Positions 13,001 through 24,460 of a DNA stretch of 64,000 nt are shown here, in pieces (position 1 is the first letter of the stretch; the number at the start of each line of letters is the position of its first letter). Under the pieces are notes generated by a model. The model did not search any database. It saw only the letters and a list, made by a program, of their open reading frames with translations, and was not told the origin of the DNA. The stretch comes from Octopus sinensis (lineage: Eukaryota), in assembly GCF_006345805.1 (NCBI RefSeq), contig NC_043017.1, forward strand, positions 6,758,001-6,822,000. Reading direction: 5' to 3'. Made by a program: the position numbers and the translations under genes.

Positions 13001-13085
13001 ATGTTGGAGAAAGGTGTAGTTGTGATAGCAGTGGTATGTTTGGCCTTGGTATGCAACTTGGCCCATGGAAAAAATAATAGTGGCA
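13001..13085 (+). CDS. Exon 1 (signal peptide) of CD164/porimin-like sialomucin: MLEKGVVVIAVVCLALVCNLAHGKNNSG
   Basis: ATG in aaccATG context, hydrophobic signal-like peptide, strong donor A|GTAAGT (phase 1) matching the phase-1 acceptors of both downstream mucin exons. Confidence 0.8.
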
Positions 13086-15104
13086 GTAAGTATTACCTCA
13101 CATACACACACATGTTCTTTTACACACACACACACACACACACACACCACACACATACACACAATTTCTCATATATTATTTTGCTGTTTTGCTTCTATTT
13201 ACTGTTTAACAGCTATTATGTATCATACCAGCTGGAAAAGAACGTTTTCCTGGGGCTTAACAACAGTAACATCCGTCCTTTATAGGACCACCACATTCTG
13301 TTGGGAAATAAAATTTGCTATATATAATATATATAGACAGATAGATAGATAGATAGATAGATATAGATATATATACATATACATATACATACTATATACA
13401 TATATATTATATGATATATATATATATATATTATATATATATATATACACAATAACATAATATTATGTATATATAATATGTATATATTATTATGTATATA
13501 TATATATATAACATATATATATACATATCTATATATATATATATAGAAAGATAGATATAGCTATATATAGATATATATACATAATATATACATATATATA
13601 TATAGAAGGTAGAATAAGCTATATATAGATATATATAAATATACATATATATATATATATATATATATATACACATATACATATATTATATGTGTGTATA
13701 TATATATATATATATATTATATATATACATATATATATAATATACGTTTATATATATATTTAACACTATACTTGTTCCACGTCCTTGCTTTGTTGTGTTT
13801 TCTTTTTGTGTTTTCATGTTTGGATTAACTATATATATATATTATATATTATATATACATACATATAATATATGTATATATATATTAAATCGTTAATCCC
13901 TACACATTTTGTTCTCCCTTTGTTTCTTTTTTGCTCACCCTCCTTTTTCTTTTACCTCTCAATCCATTTTACAAAAGAGTTTTGGTTCTAAACATCAAAT
14001 GTTTTCCATTCTTACTGAGTGTCAAACCGATACACCTGCTCATTGTTTCCTCACCTGTCTTCGTCTTTTGTTTTCTGTAAATTTGAACTATATATAATAT
14101 ATATATATATATATATATTATATATATATATATATATATATATGTATATATATGTATATCATAATTTTTATGGTGGTTTTTGGAGCAATGACTTGATTTT
14201 AGCAAGTGGTATTATATACCCTACCTAATCTTAAATTACACACACACACACACACACACACATATATATATATATATATATATATATAATATATATATAT
14301 ATATATATTTATATATATATATATATATATATATATATTTATATATATATATATATTTATATATATATATATATATACACACACACACATATATATATAT
14401 ATATATATATATATATATATATATAGATATATATATATATAGATATATATATATATATTATATATACATGAATATATATATATATATATATATATATATA
14501 TGTATATATATATATATATCTGTCAAATAATATGTGACAATTATTCAATAACCAAGGTCTCTTTCTTTCTTTTGTTTTCTTAATGTTTTTACCAACATAT
14601 ATATATATTATATATATATATATATGTGTGTGTGTGTGTCTGTGTGTGTGTGTATGGTATGTATGTATATATATATATATATATATATATATATATATAT
14701 ATATATATCTGTGAAATAATATGTGACAATTATTCAATAACCAAGGTCTCTTTCTTTTGTTATCTTACTGTTTTTACCAATATGTGTGTGTGTATGGTAT
14801 GTATGTGTATATATATAGATATAGTATTTCAGGATGGTCACACCCTCACTATATATTTCTTCTTCACTCATTTACTGCTGTTCTTATTAATCAAATGTAT
14901 GTATATAGATGTCTTAATTTCAAACGAGGCTTACATAACACTTGAAAGTTCTGGTGTTATCACATTTGCAGAGTATGTGAGTCTGTATGAAAACAGAGTT
15001 TTAACACACACTGTATTTAAGTTCTTATCACGACATAAAATAAAGTGGATGTCATTTATCTCCCCTTTTGATTTCTAACATCATTTGATAAAAGCCAAGC
15101 AGAT

Positions 15105-15420
15105 AATAATAATAATAATAATAATTGTGTACAGTGCTCAGGTGCACTACAACTCATCTAAAGTGTATATATAATCAGGTGTAGTTTCGGCAGATTTCGA
15201 AAAGCATGAGGGCCTTAAAGGATGCAGTGTCATGGCAGTCAACAACTGACACAGGCAATTTAATCCATGCTTCAGCAACTCTGAGCGTGAAAAAATGTTT
15301 CCGAAAGTCATGGGAGCTGTGTTGTTTTCTGACTTTGTAGGCATGACCACGTGTGTTAGACACATGGAGATCAAAAAGGTGTTCAGTGTTGTTGTTGGGC
15401 TTGAATCAGCCAAGCTTTAC
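15105..15420 (-). mobile_element. CR1-type LINE 3' end with (TTA)n tail
   Basis: TRGHAYK...RKHFFTLRVAEAW.KLP. Confidence 0.8.
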
Positions 15421-15660
15421 CTGCTAGAAAGAGCAGCCTAAATGTTTTTAAATCAGATCCCAGTGCTGGATGTTCAAGAACCAAATGAAGGGTATATTTC
15501 GAATCTTGGGATCATCCTGATTCCAAAAAGGCTATAATGTGTCTATGTAGATCAAATGTAGGCTGAGATACAGGGGTTCCAGACAGATAGAATTTCACAT
15601 TTATTATTATAGATATCTTTTACTTAATACAATTCAATATTTAAGAGAAGAGGAATTATG

Positions 15661-22504: not shown

Positions 22505-23025
22505 AGAAAAGTACTTCTGTTATATCTACTGAACATTCTCCTTCAATCACAACCGCAAGACTTACCACTGCACATTTAATATCAACAACTGATGTTCATA
22601 CGGAGACCACAGATCACAAGACAACACACACAGCCAGCACACATCATGATGTTACCACTACTGCCCATGGGAACCATACAGATGATCCAACACAGTCTAC
22701 AAGTTCTCCAGGTAACCATTCGACTGCTACACCTGGAAATCACACAACACCCACTCCTGGAAACCACACAACACCCACTCCTGGAAACCACACAACACCC
22801 ATTCCTGGAAACCACACAACAGCTACTCCGGGACATGAAACAACTAACCACAAGACTACAGTCACAAGCAGTGTAGCGCCGGGTACAACTGAAAAGAGCT
22901 CATTTGATGGTGGTTCGTTTGGTGGTGGAATTGCAGCAGGCATTGCTATTGCAATCTTGCTTCTGGCTCTCATCTATCTCTTCTACCGTTTCCGTAAACC
23001 TACACCAGACTATGAACAGTTATAA
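22505..23025 (+). CDS. CD164/endolyn/porimin-family mucin-TM-tail exon, copy B (about 201 aa if joined to exon 1)
   Basis: tttcag acceptor, phase 1; T/H-rich stalk with PGNHTT repeats; FDGGSFGGGIAAGIAIAILLL TM nearly identical to copy A; tail RKPTPDYEQL* with terminal YxxL. Confidence 0.88.
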
Positions 23026-24378
23026 GGTAAACCGTGTGGCACTTTTGCTCAAAAAACTTCACTGCTGACACTTATTGCCTTCCAGTCAATGCTCAAGAAC
23101 AAGATGATTTGTTAAATTTTATACATGAAAGGTTCTGGTGAAAATTTGGTTGGTAAAAAAAAAAAACAAAAAAAAAATGAAAGAAAGAAAGAAAGAGAGG
23201 AAACACCAACTACAAAAAAAATGAAAACCACAAAACTACAGCTTCTTTGCCAAATATAATCCACACAAATCTTCTATATATGTATGTATATGTATGTATG
23301 TGTGTGTGTGTGTGTATATATATATATATATATATATATATATATATATAATATATATATATATATTATATATATATATATACATAAATATAAGAGAGTG
23401 ACCACCATGTGGTCTACTCTAGCACTAAAAATAGATCCGCAAGGTTTCAGCCACAAAAGCAATTGTTTCCGATGAAAGTTAACACTACTACCAGCGCAAA
23501 TGAACAGATTAGTTCGATTAGTTCATTTGCGCTGGTAGTAGTTAATGATTGATAACTAATGATTGATAGCTAATGATTGATAACTATTACTAAATAGCAT
23601 GTGGCATTTAAGATGCATGTTTTTTTTTTTTTTCTGTTTACCAAAGATTATAAAAAGGGGTCTAAAATATCCCTCTGGGTCTTCTTTGTGAAGTTGGGTC
23701 CTCCCTTGAGCTGATTTTGTCCCTGCAGCATCCCTTCTCTTCAATATCATCATTGACCGGTCGTGCTGCTTGCTTGGATTCTTGTGACTCCCTCGGTCAC
23801 CTCCCACCCCAATTCTATTTTTCATATTTGAATTGGGAGCTTGAGTCATGATGACTCCTTCATTAGCTAATTACACAGCCAAGGATGGACATCACCCCCT
23901 AGGACACATTGTAGTTACTCTCTTGATAGAGCTTGTTGATCCTGATTATTCATCTTCTGGGATTCCTTTGCTCAGCACCAATGTAATGACCTCTATCGGC
24001 TCAGTTGAGCTCTTCCACTGCTTCTTCACAACCCACCATGCTGCAGTCCCACGACTTAGCTGTCTCCCTGGTAGAGTGGCTGAACAGGTGCTGTACCTTA
24101 CCAATATGCATTGCCTTGCCAATATCTTATTCCAAACCAATATGTTATGCCTTGAATATGAGCTACCCATGCATCTTTTATGCCATCAAATACAGAAATT
24201 ATGATAGATACTATGCCATAACTGATAAAAAAACAAAACTGCATATTCTTATTTAACTAGTACTGTATAATAACTTTTCATAGAATATTGTAGTAAGAAA
24301 CATCTTTGAGCAAGTTTTAAGGAAAATTAAGGAAAAATGGAATTTAACTATTATGTTATTTCTTTGCAAAAACATTTT

Positions 24379-24460
24379 GTCACAGATGTGTGGATTAATA
24401 AAATAAGGTTGATAAAACAAATTAATTATGGTCGTATTTTCTGTTTTATTTTTCTGTTTT
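24379..24460 (+). terminator. Putative polyadenylation region of sialomucin exon B (AATAAA at 24397)
   Basis: gtcacagatgtgtggattAATAAAataaggttgat, paralogous to the block downstream of exon A. Confidence 0.55.

Follow-up and report, generated by a model that had tools for sequence, protein, structure and literature searches.

A 64,000-nucleotide stretch of the Octopus sinensis genome (RefSeq assembly GCF_006345805.1, contig NC_043017.1, positions 6,758,001 to 6,822,000 of the forward strand) probably contains the 3' half of one complex gene for mucin-type membrane proteins, which would begin in one of two ways and finish in either of two terminal exons. This whole 64-kb stretch is called the window here, and its coordinates are counted from its first letter. 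The two terminal exons, A and B, each encode a mucin stalk, a transmembrane (TM) segment and a short cytoplasmic tail; a further exon, e1, encodes a signal peptide and lies upstream of both. The best reading of the available annotation and of the comparison with related species is that A and B are alternative ends of a single transcription unit, rather than ordinary tandem genes.

Exon A (17465 to 17817, plus strand) follows the acceptor tgtaatttcag/AT and finishes with the tail YCRKPNPAYEEC and the stop TAA at 17815 to 17817, and exon B (22505 to 23025, plus strand) follows tataatttcag/AG and finishes with RFRKPTPDYEQL and TAA at 23023 to 23025. Strong pyrimidine tracts precede both acceptors, which share the ending taatttcag/, and both exons are in frame when entered from phase 1. 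Serine, threonine and proline (S, T and P) make up a fraction of 0.53 of the stalk in A and 0.49 in B, with five and seven N-X-S/T sequons, respectively. Common to both is the TM segment FDG(A/G)SFGGGIAAGIAIAILLL, with a hydrophobic run of about 23 residues, followed by 10 to 12 residues of cytoplasmic tail. The B stalk is the longer of the two and carries PGNHTTPT repeats. The tails differ at their very end: B closes with DYEQL, a canonical C-terminal YXXPhi signal (Phi, a hydrophobic residue), and A with AYEEC, where Phi has become cysteine. As read from the sequence, the layout is that of a type I membrane protein, in which a signal peptide is followed by a glycosylated ectodomain rich in S, T and P, by one TM segment and by a short tail. 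An initial annotation of this DNA had described each of the two exons as holding a whole stalk, TM segment, tail and stop, and our reading confirms it. Exactly two copies of the terminal exon were found in the window by tblastn. Each has its own stop codon (at 17815 and 23023) and an AATAAA within a homologous block (at 20286 and 24397), which is the layout of alternative last exons.

The homology between A and B is colinear and extends well beyond the coding sequence. It covers the acceptor (17439 to 17525 with 22479 to 22571), a second segment (17631 to 17859 with 22839 to 23064, 72%) and a 3' block (20134 to 20400 with 24237 to 24502, 68%), the core of which (20247 to 20391 with 24358 to 24493) reaches 77%. 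Inside this core, the 25-mer TGTGGATTAATAAAATAAGGTTGAT, which includes the AATAAA, is identical at 20278 to 20302 and 24389 to 24413 (0 matches in 100 shuffles). Around the AATAAA, 36 nt are nearly identical between the two 3' ends, while the remainder of the 3' regions has diverged. The 3' region of A (17818 to 20400, plus strand) ends in the conserved block with the AATAAA at 20286, the candidate poly(A) signal; several more AATAAA or ATTAAA hexamers lie upstream of it. The 3' untranslated region of B (23026 to 24502, plus strand) ends in the same way, and its AATAAA at 24397 is the sole AATAAA or ATTAAA from 23025 to 26000. As the colinear homology runs from just upstream of the acceptor to the 3' block, the duplicated unit spans acceptor to poly(A). 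This is what the initial annotation had proposed: the homology that it saw between the AATAAA blocks is borne out by the identical 25-mer, and its view that exon e1 was left out of the duplication by the colinear homology and by the lack of a second e1 in the window. The near identity of the AATAAA core would fit either constraint on 3'-end formation or gene conversion. Two segments of the 3' region of A, 19596 to 19830 and 19248 to 19386, match their own reverse complements (80% and 76%); they are long imperfect palindromes and may be insertions resembling miniature inverted-repeat transposable elements.

Exon e1 (13001 to 13085, plus strand) starts with an ATG at 13001, is 85 nt long and ends in phase 1 at GCA/GTAAGT, the donor lying at 13086. 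Its product, MLEKGVVVIAVVCLALVCNLAHG/KNNSG, is a textbook signal peptide with an AHG/K cleavage site. When the plus strand of the window was scanned for an ATG followed by a hydrophobic core and a strong phase-1 donor, e1 was the only non-repeat candidate, and neither tblastn nor the signal-peptide-exon scans found a further copy of it in the 64 kb. The frame fits 17465 (A+AT=Asn) as well as 22505 (A+AG=Lys), as had been noted before and can be read directly from the sequence. With the predicted splicing, the conceptual products are 145 amino acids long for e1 with A and 201 for e1 with B.

The two terminal exons are joined in an existing gene model. XP_029649176.1 (P0003), annotated as “mucin-5AC-like isoform X2” of Octopus sinensis, was found by an index-free HMMER search that used the C-terminal 62 residues of A, of B and of the ortholog from a related species as queries. 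Its residues 238 to 270 correspond at 100% to 17465 to 17563, the first 33 codons of A, and residues 271 to 443 at 100% to 22505 to 23022, exon B. Residues 1 to 237 have no match anywhere in the window; they consist of a signal peptide (MEKMSRLLIFVAAITLALVCVANSK), two Cys-rich domains scoring as CBM_14 (PF01607) and a mucin spacer. The path of isoform X2 thus enters A from upstream exons at 17465, exits at 17563/17564 and continues into B at 22505 (G+AG=Glu). In this model, the 5' part of A (17465 to 17563, plus strand) serves as an in-frame cassette of 99 nt that begins and ends in phase 1 and is left at the internal donor CAG/GTAATC. Isoform X2 neither uses e1 nor skips A completely, and it is the only model at hand that reaches B, by way of the 17563 donor and not by a junction from 13085 to 22505. 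The long architecture is real in the family, since two relatives that are single open reading frames (ORFs) on short contigs (P0011 and P0012) also combine a signal peptide, CBM14 domains, a mucin region and a TM segment. The RefSeq name “mucin-5AC-like” is uninformative for a CD164-like type I membrane protein that contains CBM14 domains.

These data change the initial annotation in part. Its alternative-last-exon switch holds to the extent that A and B are joined in one RefSeq model, but X2 does so without e1, and in that model the mature ectodomain is not swapped as a whole: the change is confined to the part of the stalk next to the membrane, to the TM segment and to the tail. Nor is there a single signal-peptide exon, as it had supposed, given that in the RefSeq model the gene begins outside the window with a paralogous one, followed by the two CBM14-like Cys-rich domains, and that these upstream exons lead into 17465. 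The e1 peptide is paralogous to the signal peptides of XP_029649176.1 and of P0004, a protein of Argonauta hians that is built in the same way and whose tail ends in YIEC. Exon e1 is probably an internal alternative first exon of the larger gene, and its products would not include the Cys-rich domains. The single line of backing for e1 is its conservation in Argonauta.

A word-indexed protein search had missed XP_029649176.1 for queries sharing 173 or 33 identical residues with it, and returned it once the part with the Cys-rich domains was in the query. With B as the query, this search gave only an unrelated shark macrosialin fragment, and with A only P0002, a protein from a third species. 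The word index seems to cover low-complexity mucin sequence poorly, and its negatives are uninformative for such proteins. Contig look-ups for the contiguous window ORFs (22405 to 23022 and 17449 to 17814) and for XP_029649176.1 gave no record.

The locus of Argonauta hians (GCA_054771915.1, BAAFZT010000054.1; annotated gene GAB1606929.1; here L002, with locus-relative coordinates) is syntenic with the window, each species having a minus-strand VWA_3/DUF4537 gene downstream. The initial annotation had suggested synteny as a check, and in this octopod the check is positive, with e1-like, A-like and B-like exons all present. The annotated exons are ordered as signal peptide (10001 to 10112), CBM14-like, mucin, CBM14-like and, after a 20-kb intron, the A-like terminal exon (35616 to 36064, tail YIEC), all of them phase 1-1. 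The B-like exon (38417 to 39060) is unannotated. Located 2.35 kb after the stop of the A-like exon, it follows the acceptor ctgtaattgcag (tgtaattgcag/) and has 214 intact codons, which include NHTTP-type repeats and the TM motif and finish with the tail RRPQPAYEEL and the stop. The e1-like exon (25148 to 25241), unannotated as well, sits inside the 20-kb intron; its product is MARSNVLAVVSVVVVIYVALVCDMVNGQQNG, and its phase-1 end reads GAT/GTAAGT. Besides simple-repeat junk, the same signal-peptide-exon scan detected in L002 only the annotated first exon and this one. All four signal peptides, two e1-type and two primary, have (L/V)A(L/F)VC in common, and the e1-type peptides of both species share an extra residue after LVC and a Gly at position -1 that are absent from the primary ones. 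The acceptor motif TGTAATT(T/G)CAG is found in all five A-like and B-like exons (TATAATTTCAG in Octopus B). The features of the signal peptides suggest that their exon was duplicated before the Octopus and Argonauta lineages split, and the terminal exons seem to have been duplicated before it as well; for the terminal exons, the argument is that they keep the same order, that the A tails read Y-x-E-C and are accompanied by a TM cysteine, and that the B tails read Y-E-x-L. The Argonauta annotation thus misses a conserved exon pair, B-like and e1-like.

The TM/tail region is under purifying selection, with ratios of nonsynonymous to synonymous substitution (dN/dS) of 0.05 to 0.2 and a synonymous divergence (dS) that is saturated between the genera. 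In the third, related species, a Logan contig (L001, encoding P0002) has an A exon with an identical tail and a TM/tail dN/dS of 0.05. Outside the coding sequence, the Octopus and Argonauta genomes align only in short interspersed elements (SINEs) and microsatellites, and no additional conserved exons appeared in the interval from e1 to A or in the flanks before e1 and after B, where all matches were again of these two kinds. With silent sites saturated and non-coding sequence unalignable, the intact frames, acceptors and donors reflect selection and not recent origin. The B stalk has 3 to 4 PGNHTTPT units in Octopus (22711 to 22830) and about 15 HHSNHTTP units in Argonauta (L002 ca. 38480 to 38900). 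This difference between genera indicates that the B stalk changes in length through repeat expansion, with the TM segment and tail remaining under constraint.

Several observations weigh against a single gene with alternative ends. Isoform X2 is a computational model and the one source of the A-to-B junction. The annotation of Argonauta stops at the A-like exon, omitting the B-like and e1-like exons, and the conserved poly(A) block was not found in Argonauta. The orthology of A and B between Octopus and Argonauta is based on exon order, the C-terminal residue and the TM cysteine, not on overall identity. In the TM core, Octopus A and B have a dS of 0.8, against saturation between genera, so that they are closer to each other than to their orthologs; this similarity suggests gene conversion. 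The internal donor CAG/GTAAY is found after “TT” in A of three species, and the cassettes are always in frame (99, 120 and 60 nt). However, such conservation is a weak argument for the cassette, because Gly-Asn codons within the GN(H)T glycosylation motif create these sites automatically, and similar ones are found at other positions of the exons, among them 22711 in B. Finally, the failure to find a first exon specific to B favours the single gene, but as negative evidence only: motif scans, tblastn and tblastx/blastn against Argonauta detected no signal-peptide exon or conserved block in the stretch that separates A from B in the two species, microsatellite junk aside.

If A and B were an ordinary tandem gene pair, B would have its own promoter and either a very divergent first exon or a start at the ATG at 22405. 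The B frame is indeed open upstream to this ATG, through what we take as the acceptor, and the peptide derived from the pyrimidine tract (MEIFFVPYFLTSL...) is moderately hydrophobic. However, this peptide is not conserved and its Argonauta counterpart does not resemble a signal peptide, and B as a stand-alone ORF of 206 amino acids was rejected as unlikely. All five A-like and B-like exons have retained the acceptor motif, although nothing else in the introns can be aligned; neither species showed a signal-peptide exon or conserved block from A to B; and isoform X2 splices into 22505. We consider a tandem pair quite improbable; the negative evidence and the one computational model favour a route to B by splicing from exons upstream. 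The genes could also be nested, with e1 and A forming a small separate gene for the 145-amino-acid sialomucin within the final intron of the long one, which would normally end in B (or with the reverse pairing), and with little switching within one transcript family. This would agree with e1 being an intact and conserved exon, start codon included, a short way before A, with the B end of the long isoform X2 and with the presence in oysters of short relatives that lack a signal peptide or of short mucin-plus-TM relatives. Yet both independent annotations splice the long form into the A acceptor, Argonauta using the whole of A and X2 its first 99 nt, and every exon is phase 1-1, so that no partition is enforced by sequence. 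Nesting seems unlikely to us.

It would take a very unusual combination of circumstances for B or e1 to be unexpressed, decaying relics of a duplication and for the RefSeq A-to-B junction to be a prediction artefact. The neglect of both exons by the Argonauta annotation is what would be expected of relics, but the B frames are intact (173 codons in Octopus, 214 in Argonauta) and retain the acceptor, the TM segment and the YXXPhi tail, at a divergence at which silent sites are saturated and non-coding sequence no longer aligns. Likewise, the ATG, hydrophobic core, cleavage site and phase-1 GTAAGT donor of e1 have all been preserved in Octopus and in Argonauta.

As to the family to which these proteins belong, the initial annotation had assigned them to the CD164 family. 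The assignment is reasonable by layout and motif, the juxtamembrane/TM motif FD(G/A)ASFxGGI aligning to the Pfam MGC-24 model (PF05283), but the Pfam scores fall just under the gathering score of 28.5 bits: 28.3 for e1 with A (E value 2.5e-6), 23.9 for e1 with B, 24.2 for XP_029649176.1 and 22.5 for P0012, with alignments that cover positions ca. 45 to 131 of the 140 in the model. In the long forms XP_029649176.1 and P0004, two Cys-rich domains flank the mucin spacer and score as CBM_14; they are encoded outside the window. The C-terminus RNYHTL has been reported as invariant in CD164 from human to roundworm (PMC4510537), and it is present in neither A nor B. Given this absence, the subthreshold scores and the CBM_14 match of the Cys-rich domains, the octopus protein is, by its sequence, a CD164-like molluscan relative and not a CD164 ortholog. 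A literature search on cephalopod CD164 or visgun found nothing relevant. In CD164, the C-terminal YHTL is recognized by AP-2/AP-3, and mutation of its Tyr or Leu keeps the protein at the plasma membrane (PMC4510537). Relatives in other molluscs end in YXXPhi (YEVL, YNKM, YQTM and YRTM), which implies that B retains the ancestral signal and that A is derived. By analogy with CD164, B-tailed isoforms would be endocytosed to endosomes and lysosomes, and A-tailed ones, with Cys for Leu, would stay at the surface. The exchange of Leu for Cys at the last residue of YXXPhi offers a simple test case for surface versus lysosomal residence.

With A and B as alternative terminal exons of one transcription unit, transcripts could start in two ways. 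One 5' end would be formed by the exons outside the window, all phase 1-1, which encode the signal peptide, the two CBM14-like Cys-rich domains and the mucin spacer; the other would be e1, inside the long intron that precedes the last exons. Cleavage and polyadenylation after A would give proteins with the A stalk, TM segment and a tail ending in YEEC. If the poly(A) sites of A were bypassed, the transcript would reach B, either via the internal donor 17563/GT or by skipping A, and the product would have the B stalk, TM segment and a tail ending in YEQL. Such a switch would alter stalk length and trafficking, between retention at the surface and delivery to endosomes or lysosomes. We infer here the use of e1 as a first exon, the pairing of 5' and 3' exons, the control of the switch by polyadenylation and the differential sorting of the tails. 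A wider proposal, which we advance only tentatively and consider less likely than not, is that octopods have long kept a combinatorial module in which two signal-peptide first exons, one leading to chitin-binding-like domains and the other not, combine with two terminal exons, bearing a surface YxEC or an endocytic YExL tail, into four or more receptors that would vary in ectodomain, in length of the stalk and in sorting tail. The 3' choice would be made through a shared poly(A) element, and the module would be a convergent counterpart of LAMP2A/B/C. Its age would follow from the saturation of silent sites between Octopus and Argonauta.

The rest of the window contains a neighboring gene and several repeats. 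A large exon with VWA_3 and the start of DUF4537 (40365 to 41381, minus strand) belongs to the same neighbor gene as L002 40378 to 46064 (minus strand) in Argonauta, and a 270-amino-acid ORF at 35458 to 36270 (minus strand), with no Pfam match, may be another exon of it. A SINE-like repeat of ca. 235 bp is found in at least nine copies in the window, in both orientations and at 77 to 87% sequence identity (17000 to 17233, 1378 to 1611, 11924 to 12157, 28980 to 29231, 30236 to 30451, 32030 to 32266, 49801 to 50002, 52993 to 53226 and 61395 to 61625); the first of these sits just upstream of the acceptor of A. Another repeat (at ca. 7.8 kb and 16316 to 16520) has many copies in the Argonauta locus too. 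A 100-N assembly gap at 9883 to 9982 could in principle conceal sequence upstream of e1. It is flanked by two copies of an ORF starting with NRKGVMFHQDDARPHTA... (9666 to 10004 and 10742 to 11068), which had no match in Pfam and which we take to resemble a mariner-type transposase fragment. A reverse-transcriptase fragment (RVT_1, 34 bits) at 1804 to 2112 on the minus strand probably comes from a degraded retroelement.

Among known proteins, CD164/endolyn and Drosophila visgun resemble the octopus product in having a signal peptide, one or more mucin domains, one TM segment and a short tail, with YXXPhi at its end in the case of B; Cys-rich sequence is present on both sides too, but in the long octopus forms it scores as CBM_14. 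CD164, however, encodes TM segment and tail on a single exon (exon 6), and it has no duplicated terminal exon. In immunoglobulin mu (secreted or membrane) and calcitonin/CGRP, a proximal exon either is terminal through its own poly(A) site or is left through an internal 5' splice site. Isoform X2, which implies an exit from A by an internal donor, is similar in this respect. In contrast, the two outcomes here would be alike in kind, membrane-anchored proteins that stem from duplicated exons, and the regulation is presumed.

For the arrangement of the 3' end, the closest likeness noted here is LAMP2, in which the alternative final exons 9A, 9B and 9C (LAMP2A/B/C) supply the last part of the lumenal domain together with the TM segment and a tail of 12 residues (PMC10549195). 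Both are heavily glycosylated type I proteins with tandemly duplicated final exons, and their isoforms differ mainly in TM segment and tail. The families are unrelated, with beta-prism lumenal domains in LAMP2 and mucin and CBM14-like domains here. Further, the duplicated exon of Octopus carries the whole membrane-proximal mucin stalk, its A tail has lost the hydrophobic position of YXXPhi, the proximal exon may also serve as an internal cassette, and isoform usage is predicted from annotation models and sequence. The tail of LAMP2A ends in GYEQF, close to the DYEQL of B. If transcripts confirm the gene model, tandem duplication of a terminal exon would allow a single invertebrate gene to produce membrane mucins that differ in TM segment and sorting tail. 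The design of LAMP2A/B/C would then have been reached independently. Overall, the findings refine gene structure and annotation and do not amount to a new type of mechanism.

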